DNA from: Paraphysomonas bandaiensis
Lineage: Eukaryota; Protista; Chrysophyceae
Direction: 5' to 3'
DNA length: 64,000 nt
NCBI GenBank assembly: GCA_965644295.1
Contig: CBFFRP010000370.1
Coordinates: forward strand, 178,881-242,880
The notes under the pieces were generated by a model. The model was not told where the DNA came from. It worked only from the letters and a program-made list of their open reading frames with translations, and did not search any database. Positions 2,800 to 53,238 of the stretch are shown in pieces; position 1 is the stretch's first letter; each line of letters begins with the position of its first letter. The position numbers and the translations under genes are program-made.

Positions 2800-3029
2800 A
2801 AGTCAGCAGATGTCATGTACATCATCATTCTGCTTGCTCACGGCGTTGGCTTCGAGCGATAGTGAAAGTGGATGCACCTCGGGGCTTGCGGTGACGCACA
2901 AGCAGCTTTCGTCTATCGTAGCGTTAAAAAGTAGGATATCAGAATTAAGCAGTAAGCAGTAGATAGTTAAATTGTTTTGCTACATTAGTTCTGATTCGTA
3001 CACGCCTATTGCTAGTTATAAGACATTCA
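2800..3029 (+). repeat. Copy of dispersed structured repeat family (3'-terminal module)
   Basis: Similar to 53085-53238 and 30315-30375; ends in AGACATTCA like the 53238 and 51228 termini. Confidence 0.8.
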
Positions 3030-3164
3030 CTACTTCTTACTATTATATACTTTAATCGATATGATCAATGTCTTCGTCAAAAAAAATAATACAGGTTATC
3101 GCTCTATGTAACAATGTCGAGGACTATCAATATACATTCCTCGACAGTTCCCATTCAGTTGGCA

Positions 3165-5370
3165 CTACTTAAGCTTCTGCATTAATGCGACATATCTATC
3201 GATGTCAAACTTGCGTTTACATCCCGCGTAGTTCATAAACCTTATTTTACCGAACACAGGCCTCTCAGGACCCCATGCCCTATCATGTACTCCAGCTATT
3301 GCCCACATGCATCCCACATACCCTGCACACGACATTACCGAAAGCTAAAATACAGACAGCAGGATTTCTTTTGATACTCACCATTGGGGTCCCGTCCATC
3401 CAGAGAGTACTTGTCATTGAGGTACACTGCTATTCTTAGAGCATCTTCGGGATCTGTCGTCCATTCCAATATCTGCGAATAGCCACATTGAGATCACCCA
3501 ATCAATACGATTTAGTCCATACGCTTGCCTTCTTAGCCCAGTACATACGCATGAATCCGTGCATCTTGCCTCGATACACCTGAACATCATGAAATTTAGT
3601 GATGCGCCGCAAAGTAGGACATATTCGTACCAGCTCGTGCTGTGCCGCATTCCACAGATTGTCTGATGTCTTACCCTCTTCCAATTCAGCCTCAGAGTAA
3701 ACCACAGAGCGGGTATCATTCCAGTGCTCACGCAGAGTCTTTTGAGCCCAACTGTGAACATAAATCACAAAGAGTATTCAGTGACTGATCAAAGATCTCA
3801 CCTATGAGCACCAGAGATTGAGTCATACAAAGGATTGAACATACAGAAATTTTCTGCGAGTTCGCGTCGCACCACCAGTTCTTCACAGAAAGAATGCACT
3901 CCAGTAGTTCGATCACCCTCTGGGAATAAGGCTTTATTAGTTGTGAACCCTTTAATACGCTTCACCTATAGATTGCACATATAAGAATAAATGCTACAAT
4001 ACTGAAAGAAAACTTTACTTCTAAGCAGATGCGCTGGGCAGATATGTGACCGAAGTGCATATATGGGGAGAGATCAGAAGAGCCACCATTGGTGGATAAG
4101 CACGGATCATTTCTAGTAGTGGCATAGCTCTCCAACCTGCTCCCTCTTCCTCCATTTCCAAGAAAGTTTCTTAAGGCATCCATTGCCGCACCTTCACCTG
4201 GCACAGCCCAGTCTACCTCATCTACGCCACAGTCAACACCGCTAATAAATTTATATAAGTCCTCCCATCCACGGTCTCCTCCCGGTACAACCCATGTGTG
4301 GCCACTTAATTCTGGTGACTGTTCCTTCACAGGGGGGAACTCCACTAGGAATTCGTCCACAAGGGCATGTATTTTACCACGAATCGTCTTCGCAGAAAAC
4401 TCGCACTTGGGCGTCACATCCCAGCATGGACAGACGTTGTGAGCGTCCACCTGATGTAATTAGAGGGATCACCAAAGTCTCATTTGATCCATTAATTCAC
4501 ATACCTCAATGAATGTCGTTCCAATATTACTACTAACAAGTTCACTGGCAATGCGGTCCTTCCAGCGTTGGGCAGTGCGAAGTGGAGAAAAGTCGGAAAC
4601 AAGAGTTGTCACGCCATTTTCCCGACAAAACGCAGGCACAGTCTCCTCCGGACTGCCTACACAGAGCAACAATAAAATAGTAGTACACAAAACTACTACA
4701 GCTCACCTCTCAATATAAATACTGGAATACCATAGTACTCAGCTTCCGCCTGGAGTAGCTTCAGTCCCCTGAGCATAAATCCATAGTGGCGTAAGTTGGC
4801 TCCTGGAAAACAAGGAGCAAGACCGAACACAACACACAATGGAGACTCAGTTTCTTCTGCCATTTCCTGTGCCCGTATGAGTGCCCAGTTATCATGTATT
4901 CGTTGGTCTCGTGACATCCAGTATACAACAGGTGCATGCATCGGTCGGCCGTTATCGATATCTCCTCTCACGACATAACGACTGCGAGTAGAGGAACACT
5001 TCTGATTGGAATCACAGATACGATCCTCCAGTCTGGGGACATAGATATCCATATCAAGGTAGTCAGATAGTGATATATGCATCCCATTAGCAGTGTGTGC
5101 GGCTGATGCGTGAGATCTGCTCGATGTATAGTCTCTTAATAGTGTCCGGAGGACACAGGCCGCAGTAGAGGACACACGGACACTCCGGCACCTCTGTAAC
5201 CGTCTCATATATTTGATGACCACTGGAGCCATATGAGATGGCACCTGTGAGTGTCTGATAGTCTCACAGATCTGATGAAGTCTCTGATGATCGTGTTTCA
5301 CCAGACCCTCCTCTATCTCGCTCTCTATCTCCTTTATATCTAATGAACACTCCTCTTTGATAGAAGGCAT
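3165..5370 (-). CDS. PHR1: Class II CPD DNA photolyase (multi-exon)
   Basis: Motifs [79 protein letters not shown]; stop at 3165-3167. Start codon uncertain. Confidence 0.95.
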
Positions 5371-6089
5371 TACAGGGGAGATGATTGACAGGGAGGAGCG
5401 TCTTTATCGTGTGATGTGAGGGTTGTGGCGGGAGCTGCTGAGTGAGTATCTATCGTGATGTTAGTGTATGTATGTATGTATGTGTATGTATGTGTAGCTA
5501 TGTGTATGTATGTGTGTATATGTAGCTATGTGTATGTATGTGAGCGGCTGTATTCCATGCTCTACAGATGACGCACCTCTTCCAGCCAGCTTCAACTGAC
5601 GATATGGGAGACACTGCTGTATTCTTTATGTATTCTGCTGATCAATCATCTGATTGGCTAGAAGGAAAGTTGTGCAAATTCGTCTGCTCTATGCGTCATG
5701 ATAGTATACCGCTGTAGTATGCCGGTATATGTATGTACGCTGCTGTATCTATAGCTTGAGCATCTACATGGCGGTCTTATAGTTCTATAATCTATAGCAC
5801 TTGGGGTATGGATATGTGAATGATAGAGTACGTGAATGTCGTATGTGAAGTGTGGTGTATCGTATAGCTAGCATGTAGTACAGTACAGTACAGTACAGTA
5901 CAGAGTGTGGATGTGAAGTGTGTTGTATCATGAAGTACGTGAATGTTATTGGATGATTGTATTCTTCGAAGTGACTCGTTCATAGCACACTATCAGTGTA
6001 CATATACATACATACATACACTCACAATCACTGTACACATATCTGCATACACGCCTCTCCATACACACATTCATATCGCATATCATCTA

Positions 6090-6626: not shown

Positions 6627-8033
6627 AGGCTCTGAGGTGTTTTCGATAACATATGATATGATGGATTTAGTATCGACGCTATTAACAGAATTGTCGCTTG
6701 TCACTTTAATCTTCATGATACTACCGAACTCGTGCAAACTACATATTCTGCTTTCCGTTTCTATTTTGTACTTTGAAAATACTTATTAAATATATAAGAT
6801 TCTTTCGCCCTTCGATCATACGTATATAATGGAATATGTATCACAAAGAAAGTAGTAAATAGTGTTGTTGGTTGAAGCATATATGTCTATCGTATATCGT
6901 AACTGTAGTGCTTTAACAACAGTTTTATTAAGTGAATTCTATACATACTAGTGAATTCTCATGTATTAGGAGTACCACTGCAGTGCGACGTGTATGATAT
7001 TGACAAAGGTGAGAAAAATAGAAATAAAATTGATAAACAATACCAGTTAGTGTAAAACTTCTCTAACATTACCTGTTACAACTTATTACATCATTACATC
7101 TCTCTTAATTGGCTTCATTTCTACATATCAAGTACTACTATTTCTACAAAATAATAATCAATTCAAATACTTTATCCTACTATTTATTATTAATCAACGC
7201 CATAAAAGGTAGACGGTTACAAATATTTAATCTTTATAATGTCAGAAAAGTAATATAAGTTAATTAAGAATTCTGACTGAGTTTTTCCATACAATCACAT
7301 GACAGATGACGACTAACTTGGTATTGCGAGATCGTAGTGTGTACTGAGCGCTCGACGAAACTTGTAGGACGAGAATGCAACATCACAACGAATGCAGAGA
7401 GCAATAAGGCTACTAGGAGTACGACAGATAATCAAACAGCACGATATCTTGACACTGGAGTAAGTGTCGTAAACTTGCAGTACTATTTGACGCCCACTTC
7501 ATCATGTTGGCAGTCCTACGGCCATACATATTGACGAAACAGCAAACTGCCAATGGACAGCAATAAGTGTTAGTCTAGTAGAGGATTAGCTGTTGTATTG
7601 GCAGAGTATAGTATATGCCTGTACATGTCCCATCCAACACTGCTGGATATGATGCATATACTATCTTTATATATGGATACACTGCAACTACTGCTGTATG
7701 CTATAGTGTATATAGGCGTATAGGCGTATAGGCTGTGTACATATAGAACACTCACCATCACCAGATATGTTTATAGAAAAAATAAACTGAAATTTTACAT
7801 CTATTAAAGATTTTGTGGTTTGGAGGAGGTGCGATATCTATCGCATGTTTTGGTATGTATGTACGTATAGGTATGTATGTGGGCGTATAGCAGTATGTGT
7901 ATGTATATATGCACTGTGTGTGTGGTGTGTATAGATAGAGTGTGTATATACATATATATGCAGAGCATCGCATAGACACACCGACCTCCATTACTCAAAG
8001 CACATAACTGTTATATATAAGGAGAAAGTTGCA

Positions 8034-10313: not shown

Positions 10314-11600
10314 TCGCAGTCACTGAGATTCCCAATCGTTGGACAACAACATCAACACCCTCGCTAAGGAGAGATGATGAGTTAGGTATATTTGTATAGC
10401 TTTGTCTGGCATGTATTTCTTGTAATGTTTGCTGTCAAACGGTGCATCTTCATTGTTTCATCTTGAGTTAAAGGTTACGTTGAGGTCCAAAACTGGTAGT
10501 CAATGTGCTGTAATAATCATGAATTATTATTTTTGACGACTAGCTCGTGACTTGCATCAAGTAGTTTGTTCTTCAAGATTAGAAATCGCTGATTAGAAAC
10601 ATCCACATGATTTGTTGCGTGTCGTGCTCTATATGCTGGAATGCATGATATAGTATTTTAACTTCGAATACTCTCATAAGATTCAACTTACGAAATGCGT
10701 ATTTATTATTTATTGTAATAAACAGGATACTATTTAAGATTAATCATCATTAGATTGGCAAAGAGTTTGTAAGGGCTAAAGCATAAATGAAGGGTTATAT
10801 ATATATATATTACTAATAACAATATTAATTGTCAATTCTTTATATACACATTCACCGTCGCCTCAACACGTATCATCCTTATTCATTATCCGCATCCACA
10901 TTGCCGCTTTTAAATTTATTTTCTTATCTCTCGTGGACATCTGTTGGAGTACTCTCGTGTATAGTAAGTGTTCAGTACGAGGTGTCGCAGAACTTTGTTT
11001 CCTATATATAACTAGACTCACTTCGCAGTACGTGTACTATAAAGTTATCTGGCAGTCCACTCTCGATAATTAGCTGTACTACTAATCCAAATACTCATTC
11101 AATACAGATTGCAGTGCTGAACATGTCCACGAGTCATTCTATCAATACACTGCTATATCTTAATGATGATTTACACACAGAGAGTACCCTACACATATAA
11201 TCATATCGTGTAACATATTGAGGAGGTTGTATGGCTCATATGTCTTATGATATGATCCAGTGTGTCGATATGTCCTATTGTCCTCATTTCTACAGCAGTT
11301 TTATGTATAGCACTCCACACGACGTGCGTTCATATGAAGAATATTCTACGGGACAAAATCGCACTCATGTTTTTGGAAGGGAAAATACCAGTACAAACTA
11401 GTGTAGAATCCATTATTACAACGGACAAAAAATGTGATGTTGTGAGGTATGCCTGTATGTACGTGTGTATGTGTGTATGTATGTACGAGTGTATTCCTCT
11501 ATATGGTAACGACATACAGCTCGGCTCTCTATGCATGTATGTGTATGTATGTATCCTCATATCTATCCACCTCTACACTAACCACACCATAATATCACAC

Positions 11601-19126: not shown

Positions 19127-19916
19127 TGTTGTCATATGCTTTATGTTGTGGAGATTTATTTTATAAGTTCCTTGTTTTGAGGTGACTGTACTCGTAATAA
19201 TGAGGAATTTGGATGTCTAATGTAGTGATAGCATTCTCTATTCTTTATCGCCGGAGTACGATTTTGACATCCACTAGTCCACTAGCTTTGTATTTTGTAT
19301 CATGATTTAAAGATTGTGAAATCAGGCTTCGAAATAAACATACTCAAAACGATACAGGCTTGGGTAACAATGAATTGGTGAGAGCTATCCAACAAACATC
19401 TCAGAATTTATTAGGATTCAGCTTAATACATGATAGTATCTGTGAGTTATAATGTTCAATGAAATATATCATGAACTGAATTAGAGAGAGTATCTGTTGA
19501 AGATACATGATCGTCATCATAACGTCGTCATTATCAGTTACACTTCTAACTATTCCGTTGTGCATAATAGTTATGTTTTATATTGTTATTCATAATTCTC
19601 ACTCCATCGTGTTCATTACTTACTTTACACCCTAATAATCACAACAATGTTTTACTATTACTAAGATCAATTCTTTATTAAATTAACATTGCAGCGTGGT
19701 TCAGTTCCTCCATACTCCATCATACCACTCTGAATCTTGATTACTGTGTTCTTGAAATCTGAGTTTTAAACAATTTCCGCGTCTGCACCCAGGTGGAATT
19801 TTATCCCATGGTACTGAATAATTAAATAATCTAATTAAGTTAGATATCAACTTTTTTCACAACATATTACAATTATTGTATAGAGCTGTCAATACAAAGC
19901 ACTTAGCTAATAGATA

Positions 19917-20222
19917 TTCCCTCAGCAAAGTCGGACTCGCATATTTTTCGTGGTGTTCTGGGGAAAAAGTACCGGAAATATTTCTCCGGGAAACTAACGT
20001 GAGCCGCATAATATATATATAGTCAGCAAATATTGTTCTACGTTCTACATACTACCTACTCATAGCCACATGCTTGTGTGTCTCTTATGAAGACATCTTA
20101 AAGCCCTGACAAATAAACAGGCGCTCGGGACAGGTCCCACCTCAAGCCTCAAGGGCATCCCGGGTACTGGGATGCCTGCTGAAGTCAACAGATGCCAGGT
20201 ATATATCAACATTCTGCTCGCT
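19917..20222 (+). repeat. Copy of dispersed repeat family (upstream module)
   Basis: Matches the reverse complement of 29672-29925 and direct 30075-30350. Confidence 0.8.
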
Positions 20223-20480
20223 AATAATAAGATATTCACTAGAATTACATTATTATATCTAACTCTAAATTCTTCGCAACAGTACTTCAATAAAATAAAT
20301 CAAAATTATATTTTACGGACTCAGACGCTCCGTCGTGGTAACCGAAATTATAAATGTCGGGTATGAATATATAAACTGTATACAAAAAATCGAAGGCATA
20401 CTCAACCTATATCTATTATATAAAGCCACTAAGAATTGAAACCATAAATTCGACAACACAACGGAAGTTGCTTATTTCAT

Positions 20481-23400: not shown

Positions 23401-25354
23401 CAACCACAGATACTACCCTGGCGGGAAGGAATGATGGCACTTGGTTTCCATAGCCAGCTACGCACACCACAGTTAGAAATCATTCACTTTCTTATATAGG
23501 CAAATTCCCACAGATATACACACGATCACACAGTACACATGTACAGAACTGTATCAACTTACTTGTGGTCATGGTTACGACGGAAAAGAAACACGCATCG
23601 AAGAGATTCTCCCAGGCACATGTCTCAAAGTTATAACAGGGCTCCATAAAGTATAGAACTACCCCAAAAAATATATTGAAAAGAAGAAAAAAGAAGAGGG
23701 GTAGTACCAAGTGCACCATGGAGCGGCTCAGAGCGATTCGGATAGCGCGCACTGGGGGAATATCTTTCGAGGCACGAAGAATTTTCCCAGAAGACAAAAG
23801 GTCAAGGCATCTTAAAAGTAATCGCGGGAACTGACTAAGATGTTTATCTGCAGGATAAAGATACACAATTCGGACTACAAATGGCACGACACAGCAGACA
23901 TCGAAAACAAACAATACGCATTGAAAGATATCATTCATAAACTTCTCGGCTACATCTTTATTCTTCAGGAAGATGCCTGTAGCCACAGCAATACGACAGA
24001 AAGCGTCAAAGCACATCGGTACCCAACATATGACCTGAATAGTGATGTATGTCTAGCGGAAAGAGAGCACATCAGTTAGAGTATAAGAGAGCAAATGGGA
24101 GAAAACATATGAGTGAGAGCATATAAACTATCAAATGTGATATACGAGTAAAAGAGGTCAGAGAGTATGAGAGAATAAGAGGTCAAGTAATAGAGCATAA
24201 CAGATCTCATACAAGGTGTACCTGAAAATGTATATGAGTGTGTATATGAGTGTGTGTTTATATGTGAGTGTATATATATAACTGGGTTTATATATAACAG
24301 TATATATATAAGAGTGTGTAAAAATATATGAGAGCATATATTTGAGTGTATATATGTATGACTGTGTTTATATTCGTATATATATATGAGTGTATATATA
24401 TATGAATGTGTATATGTGAGTGAGTGTATATATGTATGAGTGTGTTTATATTAGTATATGTATAGGAGTGTATATATATGAGTGTGTATATGTGAGTGTA
24501 TATATAAGAGTGTGTATATGTGAGTGTGTGTATATGAGTGTATATATGTATGAGTGTGTTTATATTCGTATATATATATGAGTGTATATATGAGTATGTG
24601 TATAATAGTGTGTATACATGAGTGTGTTTATGTGAGTGAGTGTGTATATGTGAGTGAGTGTGTATATGTGAGTGTGTGTATATGAGTGTATATATATGAG
24701 AGTCAATATATGAGTGTATATATATGAGAGTCAATATATGAGTGTATATATATGAGAGTCAATATATGAGTGTATATATGAGTATGTGTATAAGAGTGTG
24801 TATACATGAGTGTGTATATATGAGTCTGTGTTAGTATATGACTATGAGTGTGTGTTTGTGTGTGGGACTCACCTGTTCATTGGGCATATGCGGATAAGTA
24901 GACATGTCCTTCCGCCCCTCGTAGTGGTTACGTCCATCAACAGTCTCCATCGCAAGACACACAGCATTGAGTATAACACACATGCTCATGATGAAGCTCC
25001 ATCTTGAGGCCCATGCAGACGACCTCGGCTCTGTTAACAACAGCACCAAATCATACAACTCCACCATACGGAACCCCCGCCGAGAGAGAGAGAGAGAGAT
25101 AGGGCACCGCAGGCTGTGTGTTTGTTGTGGATACTCTGGAGGCAGGTCTATATGTGTGCTGTGACAGTGTGGAGAGGTGTGCTGGGATGTTATGCATGGG
25201 AAGAACGGCAGGGACTACAGGACCAGTATACACGTCATGTATGTAGAATTCTTATACGCAGTAGTGCCATCTATACTGCTCTGTACACTGTACTACAGAA
25301 TGTAGTCTGGAACCTGAACTACGATCGTACGACTACTGTATTTGCATCACCCAT
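20481..25354 (-). CDS. Voltage-gated K+ channel-like protein with two tandem 6TM modules
   Basis: Two pore loops, FFSVVTMTTTGYGNQVP (spliced across 23459-23562) and WFSIVTLTSVGYGEIVP; two pre-S1 EPxSS/FPHSS motifs; two S6 segments (LSMPL, LAMPL). Start uncertain. Confidence 0.88.
24230..24860. repeat. TG/TA/GA low-complexity tract inside a Kv-channel intron
   Basis: Degenerate TATATGAGTG repeats. Confidence 0.85.
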
Positions 25355-25375
25355 GATTGGACTGAAGAAGTATAC

Positions 25376-25512
25376 ATGTATGTATGTATGTATGTATGTA
25401 TGTATGTATGTATGTATGTATGTATGTATGTATGTATGTATGTATGTATGTATGTATGTATGTATGTATGTATGTGTGTATGTGTGTGTGTACGTGTGTG
25501 TACGTGTGTATG
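25376..25512. repeat. (ATGT)n microsatellite between divergent genes
   Basis: About 24 perfect ATGT units followed by a TG-rich tail. Confidence 0.95.
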
Positions 25513-28168: not shown

Positions 28169-28192
28169 TATTTATATTATCACCGTTACTTG

Positions 28193-36773: not shown

Positions 36774-37599
36774 CCAAACGGCTAGAATAATTGGTTCCTG
36801 GAACCCTGTATTTTTTCTGTCAATTTCCAGTCACATGTACGAAGAGTACAGCAAGAATGTCACTGTGTTGATATTTTTGATGTGTTGTTCATATCTCAGA
36901 TGCTCTTAATTCTTGGAAACGCTATTATATATAATTTTTTAAGTGAGTTGGACGTAGGTTCTTAGTAACATGCATGATTATATATATAGGAATAGGGGAA
37001 TAGGTACTTCGGAGCTTCGGACTCTATTTGTTAGTTAATATTTTCCCATAATGAACTATAAAATTGTCTTAAACATTGGAAATATAATTTCAATATCATA
37101 GAGAAGCCCATTTGGGGACCTTCCCGTTTTTAATAGTTTTAAATTTTAAAGGTTTGACAAAATAAACCTAGTGGAAATGATTCGTCACTACAAATTATAG
37201 GTTGGCCTCATGAAAATACTTAAAGATTCAAATTGGTCAACGTTTTAGTTAAAAAGTGGTTAATTGTGCTCCTACGCCTTACTGAACAATGAATGGGGTC
37301 ATGTGTCATAGCAGTGAGGTCGATGAAAGCAATAAGCAAGGAATCACTATCAGGACCAGGACGATAAGGACTAGAGAGAAGTTCTAACCCTAACCCATTC
37401 TAAGTCGAAAATGAATGGATCGAAGCAAATACAATTATATGAGTAAGGAAATGCACAGTTATGTTGTGAATAACGAATGACCGAAAACATTGTGCACAAA
37501 ATACAAAGAAGTATAAGAAGTAGTATATCTATGTGGTATCACCCCTATCCTGGTAAGCCGTATGGCGTTTTATATGTAACTGCGACCCTGATCATATCA

Positions 37600-39030
37600 T
37601 CAAGAATCAGCGGTTGCAGCGGAGTACCCATTGATATCTGGCAAAATGGTAATCACACCAGGTAATTCTTCAGTTGCTATAGATTCTACGACAGCTCCAT
37701 TACGGTTTTGCTCTTGCACACAGTACAGAGCGCGCAGCCCCCACTTTCGTCTTGCCCCTTCACAGAGCGAAACTTCTGTCTTGTAGGAGCACACCACCCT
37801 ACCATTGGAATCGGCACTGTCAGACTCGGAGTAACATAGTAGAGATCTTGCTTTATCGTTGGCTGATTCACGTGAAGCCGCATTTAAATAGTCGTGAAGA
37901 CCGCAAAAAGGAAGCATTTTGTACACAGTGAGTACTCCGATGCCGATCTCTTCTCCCCCCCAATTAACAACAGACAAATCCACAACTGGTGGAGGGCTGC
38001 TGTGATGCATATATGCTGCCTCCTGAGCGAAGGAGGACCCCCTCGAGTGCAGGATCAGGTCACAGTTCCCTAACACAATAAGGTCAACTAATGCCAGTCT
38101 AACAGCATCGGCCAAGTCTCTGCGGCTCGCTAGTTCAGTAACTACCTCCATAGCCAATACGCGCCCCGGAGAGAAGTGGGAAACTACTGCACGCTTAGCG
38201 GGCTCGCTGTTTGAGGCTAAAAAGAACCTGACCGAGGGATGCTTCTCCTGTATTTCCTGCATTGACGATATCACCACAGCTAGAGGTGTACTCTCGTCAA
38301 ACCGTAAAGCTCGAGCTATGCATTTTTCATCGCTAGAACACATAGCCGGAGTAACCACAGCCCAATCGTATGCAGCATCATACGCCCTAACATGCACACC
38401 TACCAATGGTCCATCTTCGTTTCCATCTCTGAGAAGGTTAAGCAGTTCTGTCACCATAGATTTGACCATCTTGATCGGTACTAGACTTCGATAGAAGGCA
38501 CTCTTGTGGTCCATGTAGTCATCACAAGTCATGTCAATAGGCGCGTGTGAACCAGCAGTGCGCAGGAGTATTATCCACGGAGACTTCTGTTCTCCGCTAC
38601 CATTCGATCGTGTATTGAATGACATGTTAACAAAGAATTCTTTCGGGAATTTGACCGCAATTTCTCTCTTAAATATGTGGCTGATGTTTCTAAAATCAGA
38701 TATGAGTTTGTCGTTAGTGAGTTGTGTGTTAGAGTCATATGAGACCACACGAACACCAGACGCCTCTGAATCCACTTCAAACAAATCACTAAACTCAGCA
38801 TTACATTCATATGAAGCGGTCCATATGATGATAAGCTTACGACTCATAGTCTGAGATATGCTGTACGCACTCGCCATTATACGCAACCTGTTGGCGAGTC
38901 CCAACACATCAACCGGAATTACGACATACATCTCATTCGGACTGAACACACCCGCTGATAGCGTATCAGTGCACTGGCGGGTCGATATGGATAAGAGGAG
39001 AGTGAGGAGTGATACTATGAGCCTCTGCAT
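37600..39030 (-). CDS. Fucosyltransferase-like glycosyltransferase (GT-B, O-FucT/alpha-1,2/1,6 superfamily), signal peptide, intronless
   Basis: GLANRLR, VGVHVR, FFLAS, ALVDLIVLGNCD..HSRGSSF motifs; hydrophobic N-terminus. Confidence 0.8.
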   Translation of the reverse strand: MQRLIVSLLTLLLSISTRQCTDTLSAGVFSPNEMYVVIPVDVLGLANRLRIMASAYSISQTMSRKLIIIWTASYECNAEFSDLFEVDSEASGVRVVSYDSNTQLTNDKLISDFRNISHIFKREIAVKFPKEFFVNMSFNTRSNGSGEQKSPWIILLRTAGSHAPIDMTCDDYMDHKSAFYRSLVPIKMVKSMVTELLNLLRDGNEDGPLVGVHVRAYDAAYDWAVVTPAMCSSDEKCIARALRFDESTPLAVVISSMQEIQEKHPSVRFFLASNSEPAKRAVVSHFSPGRVLAMEVVTELASRRDLADAVRLALVDLIVLGNCDLILHSRGSSFAQEAAYMHHSSPPPVVDLSVVNWGGEEIGIGVLTVYKMLPFCGLHDYLNAASRESANDKARSLLCYSESDSADSNGRVVCSYKTEVSLCEGARRKWGLRALYCVQEQNRNGAVVESIATEELPGVITILPDINGYSAATADS

Positions 39031-39265
39031 CTGTGGCTATACACACTGAGGTGTAGTGTGAAGTGCTCTCTCTATGTATGTATATGTATAGTCACTAACA
39101 GGAACTGTATCGCCTACACTGTATACGTATATGTGTATTGCACTCTTATGAACACGAAGAGCTGATACTGACACCTTGACGATGACAACTAGGACTCCGA
39201 TGAACTTATACCCTCGGAACTAACTGTCTGCCACTGCCTAACACAGAAACATATCGATACTTGCC

Positions 39266-40243
39266 CATACAGGTACAGTATAGTACTTGCGGAGTGATAT
39301 CGATATACATACACATACAGGTACAGTATAGTACTTGCGGAGTGATATCGATATACATACACATACAGGTACAGTATAGTACTTGCGGAGTGATATCGAT
39401 ATACATACACATACAGGTACAGTATAGTACTTGCGGAGTGATATCGATATACATACACATACAGGTACAGTATAGTACTTGCGGAGTGATATCGATATAC
39501 ATACACATACAGGTACAGTATAGTACTTGCGGAGTGATATCGATATACATACACATACAGGTACAGTATAGTACTTGTGGAGTGATATCGATATACATAC
39601 ACATACAGGTACAGTATAGTACTTGCGGAGTGATATCGATATACATACACATACAGGTACAGTATAGTACTTGCGGAGTGATATCGATATACATACACAT
39701 ACAGGTACAGTATAGTACTTGTGGAGTGATATCGATATACATACACATGTACTTGCGGAGTGATATCGATATACATACACATACAGGTACAGTATAGTAC
39801 TTGCGGAGTGATATCGATATACATACACATACAGGTACAGTATAGTACTTGCGGAGTGATATCGATATACATACACATACAGGTACAGTATAGTACTTGC
39901 GGAGTGATATCGATATACATACACATACAGGTACAGTATAGTACTTGTGGAGTGATATCGATATACATACACATACAGGTACAGTATAGTACTTGTGGAG
40001 TGACATGCATACGTATACAGGTACAGTACTGTAATATCGGTATACATACACGTACAGGTACGGTACTTGTGGAGTGATATTGATATACTTACACATACAG
40101 GTACGGTACTTGTGGAGTGATATTGATATACTTACACATACAGGTACGGTACTTGTGGAGTGATATTGATATACTTACACATACAGGTACGGTACTTGTG
40201 GAGTGATATTGATATACTTACACATACAGGTACGGTACTTGTG
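39266..40243. repeat. 48-bp minisatellite (~15 units) followed by a few 43-bp variant units
   Basis: Unit CATACAGGTACAGTATAGTACTTG(C/T)GGAGTGATATCGATATACATACA; one internally deleted unit near 39748. Confidence 0.97.
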
Positions 40244-40915
40244 TAGATCTGGTATAGGACATCCCATACAGCAGTACAGTTCTCTGTCACATCACGCACG
40301 TCCTCCTCGTATCATATCCTGGTATCCCGATATCTACCAATAGGAATCCAGCATACAGTATCTTCGCATGTGCGTGATGCATACGATACAAACCAGAGCA
40401 TTCCTCATATTACTATCGATACCTTCAAACGTCACTTCAGGTATAATTGAGACACATGAGGACCCATCAGCTGCAATGAGAATGACAGTAAGAGCCGATA
40501 CGCATATCCCACTCTGTAGTTTCTCTCGTGTATAACTCTCTGTGCGCTCCTCTTTAAGCTCCCTACCAAACGAAAAACTACCAGCGTAGTTCTTAAAGCA
40601 CACTATAGCCGCCAGATCGCCCATACAATTACAGCACAATAAACAACGAACAGTTCATTCACTTTTGTGTGGAGGCTACTTGTTTAAATCCCAGTAGCCT
40701 CATTCAGTAAGCACATATATGTCCATATGGTTCCGAATAAGGAAGAAGGAAGACTGATCAGCCATACGAGTTAAGTGGAGTGTTGCTAATAACATTTATA
40801 GTAGTGGATAGTGAAACTATGTAGTGGATAGAGGGCGTTGCATGCGTACACAGAGCACAGTATAATAACTATAACTGTAAATCAAACATGTTTAGAGTGT
40901 TATTAGATATATTTT

Positions 40916-42408
40916 GGGAAATATTATTTAACCTACTCAATTTGGTTGACAAACCTAGTCATACCAAAATTGGTGGAATAACCTAGTATTAGTAAGAAAT
41001 GGCTCAACCTAGTCGTTCGTATATCCTATGATTACGCACTGTGACTGTCTAAGATACAATTTACACCACACAATAATATATTAATGGCTTACAGAGCATT
41101 AAAACAAACAGTCAAACATAACAATAAACTCGTATATACATATCTATTTAACATAGATGTATGTCTATCTATAGCTTATAACTATATAGCGATGGGTCTC
41201 CAGTGAGTGTTATGTAAAAGAGGGGTTCATGAAGCTGTGGATATAGCTCACACTATGATCTGCAGGACATCTTGAGACCTTCATGTGCTGTGAGCGATAG
41301 CGTTTATCTTCCTTCATTTCAAGTGGACTGTATAGAGCTCCAGCAGAATTTCAGTATCGTGAGGAGTGTGTCGTGCGATGGAGCGATTAGTCATACAGTA
41401 TCATGAGGTGTGTGTCGCGCAGTGGATCCATTATACATTATTATAGGCACCACAGTACATATATATATGTTGTAAAGGAGAGCTCTTACATATATAATAT
41501 CTGATTATTACAACATAAGAAAGGCTGTGTCTAGTATTCGTAAGTAGTGTGGCTATGGATTTAAGGAGCTATGAAATTCGCTACTTGGGGAGTGGAGTAG
41601 GTGGCGTGTAAGTGAGAGTCGGCTAGTTCCTGTGTTAGGGGTGCTGTCTATGGCAAGTAGCAGCTGTTTCCGGAGTGGATGTGCAGGCCTGGACCGTGGG
41701 CGGGATACAGTATTACAGGCACCACAGTATATATATGCTGTAAAGGAGATCTCTTACAAAATCAAGAGAAAAGTCTATGTTGCTATCGCTCTTGTCTACA
41801 ACTGTCCGCGGCTGCGGGCTGCGGGCTGCGGGATAGCCGCAATTGATCCTACTCTCTAGCCGTACATTACTTGTGTGGTATACGCAGTTTATGACTCGAC
41901 AGAATTAGATACAATAGATAATATAATAGTAAATTTACAAGGTCAAATAACAAGTAATGACACAGATATAACAAACTTACAATCTCAAAATACAACATTA
42001 CAGAACAATATAAATACTAAACATGATTTAATCGATGTAAATAATAAACTTGATTCATCATTAGTATATGATTCAAGATATATATATATACTCTGCATAT
42101 ATATATTAGAAAGCTGTGGATCTGCACCGGACATGGTTACAAGAAACTGTCCAATTTTCATTGACATGTGACGTTGAAATGTGATGTGTGACGTGTATAT
42201 AATATCTACATTCATTAATTGATGGCTAGAGTATGCTCCCATGTTTGAATAAAAATTTTCATTTTTGACTAGGTGAAAACCATAAACACCTAGTCAATCT
42301 AGTCAGTGTAAACTGAAATATGAATTATTAAATGACTAGGTTTGTACATCAATTTTAGTATGGCTAGGAAATTACACCAAATTGACTATAGGTCCAATAA
42401 TAGATCCC
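40916..42408. mobile_element. Non-autonomous Mutator-like element (Pack-MULE-like) with captured coding fragment
   Basis: 9-bp TSD ATATATTTT at 40907-40915 and 42409-42417; imperfect ~70-100 bp TIRs starting GGGA and containing repeated CCTAGT; no transposase. Confidence 0.8.
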
Positions 42409-45400
42409 ATATATTTTTAACACTTTATATTGCGATATCTGTATTCACTCTGCGATATCTGCATTATTATATAGTGTACTGCTTCTAATCATAGCTGCAA
42501 ATGAAAAAGCAATATAAGTCTATTATTGTCAACCAGGGTGGAGGAGCAGCAGAAGAAACGACCCCCGAAGAGGTTAAAGGTGTGTTTTAGTGGGTGAAAA
42601 TTCCACATATAGTTGACTGCTAGTTATACATGTATCTTTAAAAGATTTCACATCTATTTTACCTATGGGACTAGATAGTCATAGCATAAAGATTACTGTG
42701 ATCACTGTTGTTTTGTCTCACTGCAATCTACATTGAGTGGGAGTATTAGAATATGGATCTTATTCAAGTATATTCAGTATATGTCACTTGAAAACGATGT
42801 ACAAATGCTGTGATAATATTGTGAAACTGAAATAGTTTGATCTTTCAAGATATGCTTAGTAACGAGAGGTCGCATATGTAGGAGATTATGCGTGGAACAA
42901 AATGAGTCTGTGTTGTTTATCACAACTTCGTGTAAACGATATTAATAAATAACGACAAGTTTTCTCTGAGATCTAGTTAAGAATGAGCACTTTCCAGCAA
43001 TTATAAATTATTATAGATCAGAATAAAAAATGGTACCACAATGCACTATCTACTTGTACTGAGAAACTTCAATTACTTTCTATAGTATCTTTGTAGTTTA
43101 ATACGTATAGTAAATCAGTATGTTAGTTTTATATATATACAATGAATATATATGATCTAGTGGCGAAAACACATTTACGTAAATAGGGGCATATATCCCA
43201 CGATTCGAACATCACGGAAAATTTCGCTTGATTATCTCTCATTGTCTTTCGACGGCCCTCACTGAGACGACTACATATAGCCGAGAGAAGTATACGTTGT
43301 GTTTTACATATAAAACATAACGCTGGTTGAAGAGTCCAACAAACCACATAAAGAAATTAAGAACATATATTTTAAATAAATGAGGTGAAAAAAATACGAG
43401 CATGTCACCCAACGTACAAATATGATGCAATCACCCTACAGCCCTTCAGCAGCCACAATGGCCGCTGAAATGATATCACGGGCACTAATTCTATAGTTCT
43501 GAAGAATTCCTTTCTCCCCAATATCAGCAATTTTAAAATCAAGTAATGTCACACGCATATTGACTTTAACGGACCATATTTCACCACGTACTGTTGAAAC
43601 CACAACAGGTCGGCCATATTCCAAAACACTCCAGATCTACGTTATAAAATCTATAAGAACAACCTATAGTGCATTTGATTTTTTACCTTATCCCCCCTGA
43701 AGAGAGACAGTGACACACCGGTGTCCACTTCCAGCTCGAATATTGCTACAATTTCTTCTGCTCCACGACCGGTCACGGTCCCAGCTCCTGAATTTTCCTT
43801 ATAACAACCCTCTTCGACTTCGCAACGACCCATCCTCCCTTCGAGCATGTCTCCAGTGAGTGTTATGTAAAAGAGGGGTTCATGAAGCTGTGGATATAGC
43901 TCACACTATGATCTGCAGGACATCTTGAGACCTTCATGTGCTGTGAGCGATAGCGTTTATCTTCCTTCATTTCAAGTGGACTGTATAGAGCTCCAGCAGA
44001 ATTTCAGTATCGTGAGGAGTGTGTCGTGCGATGGAGCGATTAGTCATACAGTATCATGAGGTGTGTGTCGCGCAGTGGATCCATTATACATTATTATAGG
44101 CACCACAGTACATATATATATGTTGTAAAGGAGAGCTCTTACATATATAATATCTGATTATTACAACATAAGAAAGGCTGTGTCTAGTATTCGTAAGTAG
44201 TGTGGCTATGGATTTAAGGAGCTATGAAATTCGCTACTTGGGGAGTGGAGTAGGTGGCGTGTAAGTGAGAGTCGGCTAGTTCCTGTGTTAGGGGTGCTGT
44301 CTATGGCAAGTAGCAGCTGTTTCCGGAGTGGATGTGCAGGCCTGGACCGTGGGCGGGATACAGTATTACAGGCACCACAGTATATATATGCTGTAAAGGA
44401 GATCTCTTACAAAATCAAGAGAAAAGTCTATGTTGCTATCGCTCTTGTCTACAACTGTCCGCGGCTGCGGGCTGCGGGCTGCGGGATAGCCGCAATTGAT
44501 CCTACTCTCTAGCCGTACATTACTTGTGTGGTATACGCAGTTTATGACTCGACAGAATTAGATACAATAGATAATATAATAGTAAATTTACAAGGTCAAA
44601 TAACAAGTAATGATACAGATATAACAAACTTACAAGCCCAAGATATAACATTACAGAACAGCATTGATACCAAACATGATATAATAGATGTAAATAATAA
44701 GTTGGATTCTTCATTGGTATATGATTCAAGATATATATATATACTCTGCATATATATATTAGAAAGCTGTGGATCTGCACCGGACATGGTTACAAGAAAC
44801 TGTCCAATTTTCATTGACATGTGACGTTGAAATGTGATGTGTGACGTGTATATAATATCTACATTCATTAATTGATGGCTAGAGTATGCTCCCATGTTTG
44901 AATAAAAATTTTCATTTTTGACTAGGTGAAAACCATAAACACCTAGTCAATCTAGTCAGTGTAAACTGAAATATGAATTATTAAATGACTAGGTTTGTAC
45001 ATCAATTTTAGTATGGCTAGGAAATTACACCAAATTGACTATAGGTCCAATAATAGATCCCATATATTTTTAACACTTTATATTGCGATATCTGCATTCA
45101 CTCTGCGATATCTGCATTATTATATAGTGTACTGCTTCTAATCATAGCTGCAAATGAAAAAGCAATATAAGTCTATTATTGTCAACCAGGGTGGAGGAGC
45201 AGCAGAAGAAACGACCCCCGAAGAGGTTAAAGGTGTGTTTTAGTGGGTGAAAATTCCACATATAGTTGACTGCTAGTTATACATGTATCTTTAAAAGATT
45301 TCACATCTATTTTACCTATGGGACTAGATAGTCATAGCATAAAGATTACTGTGATCACTGTTGTTTTGTCTCACTGCAATCTACATTGAGTGGGAGTATT

Positions 45401-46498
45401 AGAATATGGATCTTATTCAAGTATATTCAGTATATGTCACTTGAAAACGATGTACAAATGCTGTGATAATATTGTGAAACTGAAATAGTTTGATCTTTCA
45501 AGATATGCTTAGTAACGAGAGGTCGCATATGTAGGAGATTATGCGTGGAACAAAATGAGTCTGTGTTGTTTATCACAACTTCGTGTAAACGATATTAATA
45601 AATAACGACAAGTTTTCTCTGAGATCTAGTTAAGAATGAGCACTTTCCAGCAATTATAAATTATTATAGATCAGAATAAAAAATGGTACCACAATGCACT
45701 ATCTACTTGTACTGAGAAACTTCAATTACTTTCTATAGTATCTTTGTAGTTTAATACGTATAGTAAATCAGTATGTTAGTTTTATATATATACAATGAAT
45801 ATATATGATCTAGTGGCGAAAACACATTTACGTAAATAGGGGCATATATCCCACGATTCGAACATCACGGAAAATTTCGCTTGATTATCTCTCATTGTCT
45901 TTCGACGGCCCTCACTGAGACGACTACATATAGCCGAGAGAAGTATACGTTGTGTTTTACATATAAAACATAACGCTGGTTGAAGAGTCCAACAAACCAC
46001 ATAAAGAAATTAAGAACATATATTTTAAATAAATGAGGTGAAAAAAATACGAGCATGTCACCCAACGTACAAATATGATGCAATCACCCTACAGCCCTTC
46101 AGCAGCCACAATGGCCGCTGAAATGATATCACGGGCACTAATTCTATAGTTCTGAAGAATTCCTTTCTCCCCAATATCAGCAATTTTAAAATCAAGTAAT
46201 GTCACACGCATATTGACTTTAACGGACCATATTTCACCACGTACTGTTGAAACCACAACAGGTCGGCCATATTCCAAAACACTCCAGATCTACGTTATAA
46301 AATCTATAAGAACAACCTATAGTGCATTTGATTTTTTACCTTATCCCCCCTGAAGAGAGACAGTGACACACCGGTGTCCACTTCCAGCTCGAATATTGCT
46401 ACAATTTCTTCTGCTCCACGACCGGTCACGGTCCCAGCTCCTGAATTTTCCTTATAACAACCCTCTTCGACTTCGCAACGACCCATCCTCCCTTCGAG
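41196..46498. repeat. 2.65-kb tandem segmental duplication (41196-43845 and 43849-46498)
   Basis: Offset 2653 bp; 3-nt CAT at the junction; near-identical except 41961-42063 vs 44614-44716. Confidence 0.97.
43436..43845 (-). pseudogene. Duplicated 3' fragment of the prolyl 4-hydroxylase gene
   Basis: Identical to 46089-46498; lacks the catalytic exons. Confidence 0.85.
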
Positions 46499-48877: not shown

Positions 48878-50883
48878 CAGGCTTGCGTAATGCGTAACAA
48901 TTAATTGGTTTTAAAAGTGTTAATTTCAATCAGGGCTAGGAAACAATATATTGCAATACTATTGTTAGAGAGCGTTCAATCAATACTATTGATGGAGATT
49001 TTAAACAGGCCCAACAATACAATTACAATATATTGCAATACTATTGTTAGAGAGCGTTCAATCAATACTATTGATGGAGATTTTAAACAGGCCCAACAAT
49101 ACAATTTCAATATATTGCAATATATTAGTATGACTAATCAGTAAGTAAACACATCCGTAGATTCTATTTTTAGTATTAGTCATTAAGATCACATGACAAC
49201 CAAACCAACAACTGCTTATAGCTACTAAAAGTCCACCTCGTCCTCATCCTCTGAGCCATTATCGGTGACGTCAACATCATCATATTCATTAACAGAATTT
49301 ATTGAAATATGCTAGTATTCGGCCACAACTGTCGAATCGCCTTCAGAAACAACAACATATTAAGTAGGATGGATACTTTTGCGAAACACTGATATAATAT
49401 GTTTAGCTGCGCTGAACAGACGCTCCCATGTATTGAAAGTACATACCAGGGCCTGGTAACCGTTAATGACCCGTGGACCTGTACGCTTCTTAAGTTTTTG
49501 AGCTGACTGAAGATTTTTATTCGCATAGTCAACATCAGTTTCATCATCCTTTGTAATGTTGTAATCAATTTCTCGGTTATTTATATCCATTTTGCACCCT
49601 ACAGTTGAGAATCTTCTCTTATATGACTATCATAATATTGATCGCAATATATTGCAATATATCGTGAGATACTTTAACAGAAACAATATTGATGGGATTT
49701 TTGGCCGGTCGACCAATCAATATATTTACAATATATTGTGCAATGTATTGCAATTCAATATATTGTTTCCTAGCCCTGATTTCAATTATTATTATTGGTA
49801 AATGTTGCCAATTAATTGCAATTAATTGGCTGGCTGAATTATATATAGCATCTAGCATCTTACGATATCTAGCTACTGGTCTTAGCTACTTATCATTTTA
49901 TTAATCTTAATTAGGGTTAGTATACACTTTTACCACGGCATGCAAGAGTAATATATCGTGTCAAATATCGTTGGCAAATAACAAGTAGCGCACCTTCATA
50001 ACGATCGTCTAGATACATAACATATATAATGTGATAGCATATTGAACTGCTTCGAAATATTCAAGTATAGTAGTGTAAATGACGTTATAAGTGTATTCGT
50101 TAGGTATCACTATCAGAGGAAGAGAAGTATGTGTTTGTGCAAGAATACCTTAATACAGATGATCCGTAGGGTGCGTGTACAACTATAATGGACTAGAAGC
50201 ATTGGATAGCCATATACATATCATTCTTTTTTATTCAACAGGATGGCATCGAATGAACAAATTTGATGATTTAAATCGTCAGTACCCTGGGATGATATTT
50301 CACCTCGGTGCAGACGCGAAAATTGTTCACAACGAGACTTCGAGAGAGTAGTAGTCAAAATTCAGCGCGGTAGGGAAGAGGAACTGAACCACGCTGAAAA
50401 AACACAGATGCGACGCTTTTTGATAAAAGATGTACCTGCACACGAAGGTTAACTTGATGAAGAGAAAGATGACGAGGGGGAAGATGAGGCCATTCGTTTA
50501 CTTAAAGACAACCGAAAGCGCCAAAAAGCACGTATCAAACTTCCAATACGATATCGTTGCATGAAGTACTTGTATAGCACTACCAACATGTTTGTGAGAG
50601 GTTTTTTAGCAGAGCTCAGATTGTCATGACTAGATTTTCGCAAGCGAATGACACTTAGACACCTTGAAATTAATAATGTTGAGTTTTCTGGGTGAAAATG
50701 TTAATGTTTCTTTGAGATGAGATTATAATTCAGAAAGTTATTCTAGAATCTATTAATAGAATTAAAGGTAATTAATTGGCAATCATTGCCAATAATTGGA
50801 TGCTTGATTAATAAAATTGCAATAATTATTGTTGGACACCTGTCACCAATTAATTGCCAATTAAAATTTGTTACACAAGCCTG
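48878..50883 (+). mobile_element. Non-autonomous hAT DNA transposon with decayed transposase C-terminus
   Basis: 8-bp TSD CTCCATAT (48870-48877, 50884-50891); TIR CAGGCTTG(C/T)GTAA; remnants HLGADAKIVHN, VVKIQRG, ERFFS at 50260-50670. Confidence 0.9.
48931..49778 (-). mobile_element. Second hAT element nested in the first
   Basis: TIR CAGGGCTAGGAAACAATATATTG; 8-bp TSD ATTTCAAT (48923-48930, 49779-49786); minus-strand ERLFSAAKHIISVFRKSIHP dimerisation-domain remnant. Confidence 0.92.
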
Positions 50884-51227
50884 CTCCATATACACATCAG
50901 ATGAGCACCCATATTTAAAATCAAGTCAAGTGTACAAGTATCATAATAGAACAGTGCTACGCTTTATCTCACAGAAGAAGCAACAGTGTTAGACGCCCTA
51001 CCTCTATCCATATCCTTGCATTTCTTGATTGCCCCGCCTTTGTTGTACTTTCTTCTATAGACATCATATTATTGAGACTTCAAGAAGGGCCTGTTCGCCT
51101 GTTCGACTTCGAGCACTTTTCTCTTAAATAGAGCAAGTCGGCCTCCTCCACTCTTTTGCTTCATCAGAGTGGTTTATTTGTATTTAGTTCCTATGATCAG
51201 TGCTACACAGCTTAAGCTGCTATATAT

Positions 51228-53238
51228 TGAATGTCTGATTATTTAGCAATAGGCGTTGAAAGCCTGCACCAATTAGTGGCTAGAAGAATGCTAGTCATAC
51301 TAGTTAGACTACTACCCGTAACTAATCAATACAAACTCTTTTATCCTACTATTTAACGCTACAGAAGCTGCTTGTGCGTCGCCGCAAGCACCAAGGTGCA
51401 ACCACTTCCGTTCTTAGTGTGTGTTATGAGGCTCGCCATGATCGTGTGTCCTGGGACTCACCGGCGCGTGTGATCTGGAGGTCTCCTCTTGGGATGAGAC
51501 TCCACTCGCTATATGATAGATAGCCTTATGTACCTCACGGGGACTGACTTATTAGCCTTATGGCAGTTAGGGGAAACAGTAATATGCCCTTCTGAGATTG
51601 GCGATCTGGTGGCCTTCCTTTAGGCATTGTTCCAAGTGGCTCGGAGGTATGTGGATGAAGGTCTTGCAAAAGGTTATGGCCTACTGTGAAGAAGCGTCGA
51701 AATCGGCTCTTTTGCTGTCTTAGCCAGCGGTAGAGAACACATGCAAGAGGGTGTATAGCTGTACAGGGGTGGGATGTGAGGGTCATCCGGTGTGTCCAGC
51801 TACAGGGAGTCGAGAGGGAGTGTGATGGTGCAAGAGAGGCAACATCTGATTGAGGGGAGTGAGACTGCGCAACAGAACAAGAGTCACTGAGGTCGAGTAC
51901 TCTGATAGACCTATGCACGAGATGATCGTGATGATGATGATGGTCTGGAGGAGACACTCGGACGTCCTCAGCTGCTCTTGTTAGTGTCTGTGTTGGTGCA
52001 GGGGGGTACAGACTGAGGCATAGAGAGTGTGTGTAAGGAAGATGACGGCAAGGTATCAGAGACGAAGGGAGGGGAGATGGTTTGTCTGGGGGTTTTCTAG
52101 GAGGAGGTAGAGTGTACTGTGTGTGTGTATGACACTGCAGTGGTGTTATGAGTGTGTTGGACAGAGAGAGAGAGCTGGTGATGTGTCCAACAGTACAGGT
52201 AGACAGGTACATGGACATGGTGATGTGTCCAACAGTACAGGTATACAGGTACATGGACATGGTGATGTGTCCAGCAGTACAGGTAGACAGGTACATGGAC
52301 ATGGTGATGTGTCCAACAGCAGTAGAGGTATACACGGAATGGTATACATCCTGTAGGACACAGTAGTACAGTAGTCGAGTATACCGTATGGAATACAGTG
52401 TCTATCCAATGAGATGGATGGGCTGTGGGGGTGATAGGTGAACAGGGTGAGGGGGTAGCCTGCTGGGTGGATGGACCACAGACAAACCATGTTGGGTTGG
52501 GTTGAGTGGGCGGCAGAAGGCAGCCCTGTTGCACAGTTGAGAGGGATCGAGAGTATTCAGTGATTGCATAGGGGGTCCATGGGGGTCGTTTTCGTGAGCC
52601 TGCTCGCACGAGCCATGTTCTGAGAGGTTGTAGCCGTAGAAAGCGATGGGTGAGACGAAGTTGTCTGCTGAGGGGATAGCACATAGGTGCGGTCAGCGCT
52701 GCATTGGTGCAGGCACGTGGTTTAACTGAAGTAGTTGAGTAGGGTGAAGGTTGCAAGGCCAGGCAGGGGGGCTTGGAGCGTGTACAACATGGTGTGACAG
52801 GTAATTTGTCAGAAGCGTGGTGGTCAACAAAATGCAGCAGTAAGGGAGTGTAAAAGGCCCTGGGCACACTGATGTGACTCAGCCACGGTCTCAATAGAGA
52901 CATTGGGCTTGGAGCTGGTTAATAGGGTGAAACTTTATGTTGGACTGTATTTGCCATCGTAGGGCAGAGAATATCTCTTAAGCTGCTGTTAACAAGCATC
53001 GGGGAATGGGCCCAGCTCAAAGTCATCCATGGTACTGGGCTGCCAAAAGTCAAGCATGGGCTGTTCAGCTAAAGGAAAGAGAGAGTGAAAGTGGTTGCAC
53101 CTTGGTGCTGGCGGTGACGCACAAGCAGCTTTCGTAGCGCCAAATAGTAGGATATCAGAGTTAAGCACTAGGTAGATAAATTGTTTAGCTATATTAGTTC
53201 TGACTTTTACACGCCTATTGCTAATAATCAGACATTCA
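51228..53238. mobile_element. ~2-kb element with non-identical inverted ends (longest member of the dispersed repeat family)
   Basis: Both ends read TGAATGTCTGATTAT(T)TAGCAATAGGCGT inward; C-rich minus-strand ORFs 51535-52335 and 52097-52903; 42-bp internal tandem repeat 52177-52320; no TSD seen. Confidence 0.7.

Follow-up and report, generated by a model that had tools for sequence, protein, structure and literature searches.

The dispersed repeats in a 64,000-nt stretch of Paraphysomonas bandaiensis DNA (contig CBFFRP010000370.1, positions 178,881 to 242,880; hereafter the window, numbered from its first letter) are likely to constitute a mosaic family of non-autonomous retroposons of the non-long-terminal-repeat (non-LTR) kind, resident in the Paraphysomonas nuclear genome and equipped with a structured 3′ module. 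Their target-site duplications (TSDs), 5′ truncation and non-coding content fit insertion by target-primed reverse transcription. The 3′ module consists of two parts, domain 1 and domain 2. Conserved RNA structure is probably present in domain 2; domain 1 is under sequence constraint and has a predicted fold.

We collected the copies by self-comparison, with nhmmer, and with a covariance model searched with its filters off. Similarity within the family lies well beyond chance (blastn E values to 1e-43, nhmmer to 1e-50, cmsearch 1e-9 to 1e-42). The copies and their parts are as follows:

Copy A, 2775-3059, plus strand: 285 nt, 5′-truncated, cmsearch 51.6 bits; TCAGCAGATG module, domain 1 (2864-2910), copy-specific outer stem, domain 2 (2938-2949 pairing with 2984-2995), tail (3002-3029), then a 30-nt A/T-rich extension.
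Copy B, ~52986-53240, plus strand: ~255 nt, 5′-truncated within the 5′ modules, cmsearch 81.8 bits; domain 1 (53087-53133), domain 2 (53155-53164 with 53194-53203), tail (53211-53238).
Copy C, 28950-29921, minus strand: 972 nt, labelled in our list as the longest element, its limits set by a perfect TSD; from 5′ to 3′, head, GCATCCGGG-type 5′ modules, 520-nt internal segment, domain 1 (29100-29146), domain-2 main helix (29058-29076 with 28996-29014), tail (28966-28993), A/T-rich extension.
Copy D, 51223-51934, minus strand: 712 nt, without 5′ modules; domain 1 (51363-51409), domain-2 main helix (51321-51339 with 51259-51277), tail (51228-51256).
Copy E, 28650-28908, plus strand: decayed mosaic lying tail-to-tail with C, nhmmer E 1.2e-15; 5′ half of domain 1 only (GNRA hairpin deleted), A/B-type domain 2 with its fold lost, tail.
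Copy GF, 30074-31190, plus strand: 1117 nt, head-to-head with C; 5′ modules (30076-30305), TCAGCAGATG module (30310-30374), unique 750-nt interior, GCAA hairpin island (31147-31156), tail (~31170-31190); neither domain 2 nor the 5′ half of domain 1.
Copy H, 19919-20240, plus strand: 5′ head and 5′ modules fused straight to the terminal tail (20222-20240), with TTGCT/TCGCT microhomology shared at the junction; both hairpin domains absent.
Copy I, ~7030-7200, minus strand: old, decayed C/D-type fragment consisting of linker and domain 2, with its fold lost.

Copies C, GF and A are each flanked by a TSD that abuts the boundary of homology. The TSD of C (TAGTGAAAGTTCC, 13/13) lies on the minus strand at 29922-29934 upstream and 28937-28949 downstream, and within the window this 13-mer occurs at those two sites only. 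Copy GF is flanked by a perfect 12/12 duplication (TACTTCGATGTT, 30062-30073 and 31191-31202), and copy A by a 17-nt duplication matching at 15/17 positions (2758-2774 and 3060-3075; one mismatch, one gap). These TSDs vary in length (13, 12 and 17 bp) and all start with TA; in random trials, an abutting perfect match of at least 12 nt was obtained at 5e-5 of random loci. Copy B has a probable decayed TSD (52963-52985 and 53241-53262) that is weak, with ~17/23 matches counted by eye. The TSD search gave only short or imperfect candidates for copies D, E and H, among them a 7-nt candidate for D that is not significant, and we did not rely on any of these.

The ends of the elements show the same pattern. 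Elements begin with CCCTCA, and A, B and D begin at different internal points, while the 3′ tail is common to the copies, as a first-pass annotation of this DNA had recognised; this shared 3′ end is a tail of ~30 nt finishing in ATTCA, followed by an A/T-rich extension of 1 to 30 nt. No terminal inverted repeats were found within any element. An inverted repeat (29672-29828 and 30076-30229) does span C and GF, and since each of these copies is flanked by its own TSD, it represents two independent head-to-head insertions. Taken together, the variable TSDs, the 5′ truncation with a common 3′ end, the variable A/T-rich extension, the lack of terminal inverted repeats or TG..CA ends, and the absence of coding content indicate target-primed reverse transcription.

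The evidence for non-coding content came from the open reading frames (ORFs) and from copies outside the window. The longest ORF confined to an element encodes 143 aa; a 266-aa ORF in copy D (51535-52335) extends into a flanking tandem repeat, and no element ORF matched Pfam at E <= 1. Among the 28 window ORFs scanned against Pfam, which included all element ORFs and most ORFs of at least 150 aa, we found host genes only, with no reverse transcriptase, endonuclease or transposase. We reached the outside copies by protein search with the translation of the spurious 143-aa ORF in C, which led to the proteins P0036 and then P0037. One, L007, is a 1151-nt contig from the poly(A)+ transcriptome of the same organism and carries a third C/D-type copy, 83% identical. 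The ORF of L007 led in turn to L008, a 620-nt environmental contig (ENA ERZ17294013) with a complete domain 1 and domain 2 and a 3′ module 87% identical to that of C/D. In these comparisons the ORF translations are 63-67% identical and the DNA 78-83%; faster divergence of the translations is what non-coding sequence would be expected to show. Pattern searches with GTGGNTGCACCTNGG, a gap and CACAAGCAGC, leaving the hairpin free, gave 0 matches in viral contigs and 0 in JGI metagenomes, and a tail pattern gave five metagenome matches, all attributable to chance, with similarity limited to the 23-25-nt pattern itself.

The family is modular. The 5′ head is found in C and H, the GCATCCGGG-type 5′ modules in C, GF, H, B and E, and the TCAGCAGATG module in GF, A and H; the interiors vary (520 nt in C/D, 750 nt in GF), domain 2 comes as two alternative cassettes (an A/B/E type and a C/D type), and the tail ends in ATTCA. 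Copy E joins a C/D-type upstream part to an A/B-type domain 2. Identity between copies C and D is 98.3% over 712 nt, and similarity of D to C starts exactly where similarity of C to the 5′ modules of GF stops (29671/29672; D end 51934). This coincidence suggests that copy C is a chimera of 5′ modules and a D-type unit, produced by template switching of the reverse transcriptase. The 5′ heads of C (29830-29921, minus strand) and H (19919-20025, plus strand) carry a hairpin in the same position with different sequence, its stems being CCGGAGAGA..TCTCTGGG in C and CCGGAAA..TTTCTCCGG in H. These hairpins are a possible second structured region, with fold z-scores of +0.30 and -0.66 that are not significant. 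Copies are also clustered in mixed orientation, with E, C and GF within 2.6 kb (28650-31202) and D and B within 2 kb (51223-53262). The clustering and the TA-starting TSDs suggest either a target preference or insertion beside older copies.

Evidence for RNA structure is concentrated in domain 2, which is enclosed by an invariant stem (TAGG/CCTA region). The first-pass annotation had described a G-U-rich minus-strand helix of 17/17 pairs with six G-U pairs, and this helix lies within the 19-bp helix of copy D, which contains 7 G-U pairs. Fold z-scores were computed against dinucleotide shuffles for the sense and antisense strands, and in 5/5 intact copies the sense strand folds better than the antisense strand:

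Copy A: -4.24 sense, -2.15 antisense.
Copy B: -1.83 sense, +0.66 antisense.
Copy D: -2.30 sense, -0.48 antisense.
L007: -2.27 sense, -1.07 antisense.
L008: -1.90 sense, +0.46 antisense.

In the decayed copies E and I the fold is lost (z +1.40 and +0.94). The most informative comparison is between D and L008, whose domain 2 differs at ~17% of positions (83% identity). The 19-bp helix has accumulated 7 substitutions with 0 pairs broken, including two double changes (A-U to G-C; G-C to A-U) and three interconversions between wobble and Watson-Crick pairs. When substitutions were placed by simulation, this outcome had p = 0.007 at the empirical transition/transversion ratio and 0.08 if all substitutions were taken as transitions; in the helix there are 7 transitions and 0 transversions, versus 4 and 5 elsewhere (p = 0.03). 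In L007 the upper helix has one further double change, whereas three pairs of the lower helix are broken.

We also examined a six-sequence alignment, which was fitted to the structural model and hence leans towards structure. In it 94.4% of cells are paired, versus 32-44% for slid partners; 7 pairs are changed on both sides, versus 3.8 +/- 1.3 in shuffles (8/500 reach 7), and the covariation score is above all 500 shuffles. For the domain-2 helix alone in the same six sequences, 4/19 pairs are changed on both sides and 94.9% of cells are paired. These statistics lend moderate support to the domain-2 structure without proving it. The sequence comparisons are moderately consistent with a domain-2 helix that has been kept through compensatory change while its sequence drifted. 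The first-pass proposal of selection at the RNA level is moderately supported for the long domain-2 helix, on the strength of the compensatory changes and the better fold of the sense strand (p about 0.007-0.08), but not for the GNRA hairpin, whose invariant stem reflects sequence conservation and not covariation.

The GNRA hairpin belongs to domain 1, a 47-nt segment predicted to fold into a closing stem that bears a GCAC-CUUG-GUGC hairpin and a GCG-GNRA-CGC hairpin. The five GCG-GNRA-CGC hairpins listed in the first pass are all present; they lie within the repeat family, and GCGGNRACGC has no further match in the window:

2888-2897, plus strand: GTGA loop (copy A).
53111-53120, plus strand: GTGA loop (copy B).
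31147-31156, plus strand: GCAA loop (copy GF).
29113-29122, minus strand: GCGA loop (copy C).
51376-51385, minus strand: GCGA loop (copy D).

All five loops are of the GNRA type, as had been claimed, subject to several qualifications. Copies C and D are nearly identical, so that the five hairpins represent four lineages; the copy at 31150 is a mere 16-nt island (14/16 identical) beside the tail of the 1117-nt GF, not significant when taken alone (nhmmer E 0.57, cmsearch E 4.4); and E, H, I and the L007 transcript lack the hairpin. The loop changes that keep GNRA number three, all of them transitions at the two free positions, and are not significant alone (chance ~0.06-0.16 by our own estimate). 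The reported difference in the closing stem is present: A and B pair GAAAG with CTTTC, C and D pair GGAAG with CTTCT, and the two forms differ by one A-U to G-C double change and one change from G-C to G-U. Compensatory change within domain 1 is confined to this stem. No other block is as well conserved between A, B and C as domain 1 (85-91%), and in the comparison of D with L008 only 1/68 positions differ in domain 1 and its linker, versus 15/87 in domain 2 (p = 0.001).

These observations can be arranged into a mechanism in which the RNA copy would be reverse-transcribed directly at a nicked target, by an enzyme supplied in trans by an autonomous long interspersed nuclear element (LINE), or possibly a Penelope-like element, located outside the window. 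The 3′ module of domain 1 and domain 2 would then be the part of the RNA that is bound by the partner's reverse transcriptase, as in the 'stringent' pairs of LINEs and short interspersed nuclear elements (SINEs), with the last 20-30 nt acting as the minimal priming signal; by analogy with those pairs, recognition by the reverse transcriptase is our best guess for the role of the module. The mosaic 5′ parts would probably have arisen by template switching. The deletion in copy H has its junction in a TTGCT-type microhomology; the reverse transcriptase may have jumped on the template while copying a complete RNA, or the segment may have been lost after insertion. Of the first-pass suggestion of a retroposon 3′ recognition structure, the retroposon is supported by perfect 12-13-bp TSDs, 5′ truncation and non-coding content, and the recognition role is proposed by analogy, in a family where GF and H are without most of the structure.

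Several results weigh against a structured recognition module. The part that is universally shared is only the last 20-30 nt. Copy GF, which its perfect TSD marks as young, has neither domain 2 nor the domain-1 closing stem; what remains of its 3′ part is the hairpin island and the tail, and H is left with the tail. Unless such deletions took place in the course of insertion or later, the hairpin domains may thus be dispensable. In domain 1 both tetraloop hairpin stems are invariant across copies and hence uninformative on structure, the predicted fold is no better than that of shuffles (z +0.97, -0.02, -0.58 and -0.15), and the single change in L008 breaks a 3-bp junction helix. Domain-2 helices of the A/B type pair in another register than those of the C/D type. 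The two resemble each other in shape and not column-wise, and for that reason we rejected the resemblance as covariation. The sample comprises five to six sequences or lineages that are related to one another. No autonomous LINE or Penelope-like partner was found in the window by Pfam among the 28 ORFs scanned, and no Pol III-type head was detected, ARAGORN finding no tRNA gene in the window and Rfam in E-value mode giving no relevant match over 28600-31300, a region that includes the heads of C and GF. Finally, the library behind L007 is unstranded, which does not fix the transcribed strand, and the contig is possibly a read-through transcript.

The alternative that survives best, though we judge it unlikely, keeps the retroposon and makes its hairpins passengers. 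Only the terminal 20-30 nt (GCTAATAATCAGACATTCA) would matter for mobilisation, the domains would seem conserved because the copies derive recently from a small number of masters, and folding would have singled out the G-U-rich helix. Such an account copes well with H, which retains the tail only, and with GF, which despite its perfect TSD retains the tail plus the 16-nt island; it also accommodates the domain-1 z-scores of about 0, the helix-test p of 0.08 under all-transition substitution, and the tiny sample, and it can appeal to the tolerance of G-U pairs for both transitions, which inflates apparent conservation. It does not predict that D and L008, with domain 2 ~17% diverged, would show 0 broken helix pairs and two double changes, nor that the sense strand would fold better in all five intact copies, that domain 1 would be more conserved than its neighbours (p = 0.001), or that the fold would be lost in decayed copies. 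We prefer the retroposon with a structured 3′ module. A bolder form of this reading, in which domain 1 (47 nt, with CUUG and GNRA tetraloops) and the domain-2 helix together would be an undescribed RNA recognition module governing template choice by a stramenopile LINE or Penelope-like reverse transcriptase, seems doubtful to us; if true, no LINE-dependent retroposon system of chrysophytes would have been structurally defined before this one. That the two domains form a new catalytic RNA is less likely than the recognition module.

A self-cleaving ribozyme in domain 1 or domain 2, or a dispersed independent non-coding RNA gene, is very improbable. Some retroelements do carry ribozymes, namely ones like that of hepatitis delta virus in R2 and L1Tc and hammerheads in Penelope-like elements, and this precedent, together with the compact junction, the GNRA and CUUG tetraloops and the strong sequence conservation, speaks for the idea. 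Rfam 15 gave 0 matches at gathering score in the window and no relevant match at E <= 5 in the copies: over 28600-31300 there were two chance-level matches only (E 4.2 and 4.4; 15-18 bits versus gathering scores of 40-95), both outside the 3′ module, and over copy B there were none. The module contains no hammerhead core motif, half of the lineages are without it, and at its distance of 100-190 nt from the 3′ end self-cleavage would cost the RNA its tail. The first-pass suggestion of an unrecognised ribozyme or non-coding RNA thus found no support, in either the gathering or the E-value mode of Rfam.

The same annotation had offered an LTR R/U5 region as a further option, and we consider it highly improbable that the element is a solo LTR or an R/U5 portion of an LTR retrotransposon. 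The copies cluster (E-C-GF; D-B), and LTRs are typically mosaic repeats of 0.3-1.1 kb that are rich in indels and contain structured RNA regions; however, the TSDs are 12, 13 and 17 bp and variable, versus the 4-6 bp expected, the ends are not TG..CA, 5′-truncated copies have their own TSDs, no direct pair of copies surrounds an internal region (neighbouring copies are inverted, each with its own TSD), and no gag, pol or reverse transcriptase match to Pfam was found in the 28 ORFs scanned. An origin at the DNA level, be it as a miniature inverted-repeat element, some other type of DNA transposon, a Helitron or a simple segmental duplication, is scarcely credible: the 712 nt shared by C and D at 98.3%, the inverted repeat formed by C and GF and a 5′ motif starting with TC speak for it, but the C-D identity stops exactly at the 3′ end of the element, the inverted repeat consists of two insertions with a TSD each, the elements contain no terminal inverted repeats, TSD length varies, and there is neither a CTRR end nor a hairpin near the terminus.

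Among known systems, the closest are the stringent LINE/SINE pairs, whose members share a structured 3′ tail, as in eel UnaL2/UnaSINE1 and zebrafish ZfL2-1/ZfL2-2 (PMC1636434, PMC4176376). In stringent LINEs the ORF2 protein binds a stem-loop of the tail, and the tail is required for mobilisation (PMC4176376, PMC1636434). The Paraphysomonas family is similarly non-autonomous, with a conserved 3′ tail including a predicted stem-loop, no poly(A), variable TSDs and 5′ truncation. Unlike these pairs, it was seen here with neither a partner LINE nor a short terminal repeat, and it resides in a stramenopile protist; its module is ~170 nt long, has two domains and lies 30-190 nt from the end and not at the end, and two members are without the module. 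In modular 'jigsaw' SINEs, heads, cores and tails are exchangeable (PMC4758252). Our family is likewise a mosaic in which 5′ modules, the TCAGCAGATG module, domain 1, two domain-2 cassettes and the tail have been recombined among copies, but it has no detected tRNA-, 5S- or 7SL-derived head and its elements reach 1.1 kb. We do not class it as a SINE in the strict sense, with a tRNA, 7SL or 5S head: ARAGORN found no tRNA and Rfam nothing relevant.

RIME/ingi and NARTc/L1Tc of trypanosomes are short elements built from the ends of an autonomous LINE. Copies H and B resemble this arrangement, with 5′ modules joined to the 3′ end and the interior gone, and the family is equally non-coding, dispersed and TSD-flanked. 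It differs in having neither a poly(A) tail nor a Pr77-like 5′ signature, and an origin by internal deletion from a parent is only a candidate. In Penelope-like elements TSDs vary in length, 5′ truncation is frequent, neighbouring copies lie head-to-head or in tandem, and the terminal repeats contain structured RNA motifs. The family shares the variable TSDs, 5′ truncation, head-to-head neighbours and, as predicted, structured RNA motifs, but has no hammerhead (Rfam negative) and no reverse transcriptase/GIY-YIG ORF, and C and GF are separate insertions and not one inverted-repeat unit.

To our knowledge, hardly any mobile elements have been described from chrysophytes or from other heterotrophic stramenopiles, and literature searches on Paraphysomonas repeats or the motif strings of the family found nothing relevant. 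The family provides a clean, TSD-delimited example of retroposition in chrysophytes, a covariance model (R1) that can be used for masking and annotating the Paraphysomonas genome, and a candidate RNA module with which to study template choice by the reverse transcriptase of a protist. It leaves retroposon biology unchanged, since structured shared 3′ tails are a textbook trait of stringent LINE/SINE pairs: the family adds a further case of a well-known type of element, from a lineage that has been little studied, and is not a new kind of RNA.

The window itself is eukaryotic nuclear DNA of the chrysophyte Paraphysomonas, as shown by its eukaryotic host genes and by an ORF (37600-39030, minus strand) that is identical to a Paraphysomonas protein. 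That ORF has 100% identity to a protein of transcriptome MMETSP1103 (taxid 36769, Paraphysomonas, a heterotrophic chrysophyte), and the corresponding transcript (L001) covers 37238-39211 of the window at 97% identity (2021 nt versus 1974 nt). The Pfam scan identified a photolyase, p25-alpha, a GINS Sld5 subunit, a multi-domain cation channel and a Cdc14-type phosphatase among the window ORF products. The cation-channel gene (20481-24016, minus strand) is split over three adjoining ORFs (20481-21329, 21323-23470 and 23492-24016), which short introns or frameshifts would explain, and copy H ends ~240 nt past its stop codon on the opposite strand.

The window also contains microsatellites, satellites and other repeats. 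A separate dispersed repeat, 76% identical between 19689-19836 (plus strand) and 50260-50399 (minus strand), lies in each case no more than ~1 kb from a retroposon copy (H and D, respectively). Just upstream of the minus-strand gene at 37600-39030, a 48-nt tandem array of ~17 units is followed by a 43-nt array (39139-40245). A 2650-nt unit is duplicated in direct tandem, 99.3% identical, across 41196-46498 (41196-43845 and 43849-46498), and a large inverted repeat at 59097-61558 is made of arrays of 51-60-nt satellite units, with arms of up to 696 nt at 96% complementarity (59433-60128 versus 60749-61444) and a spacer of ~620 nt. There is a GT-rich satellite of 14-16-nt units at 24217-24856 and a long (TGTA)n microsatellite at 25371-25514, with similar TGTA-rich tracts at 427-518, 5427-5580 and 11435-11577. 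Finally, an 82-nt exact tandem pair and a 42-nt repeat present three times are located at 48943-49106 and 52161-52319, the 42-nt repeat being sited between copies D and B, within the spurious 266-aa ORF.

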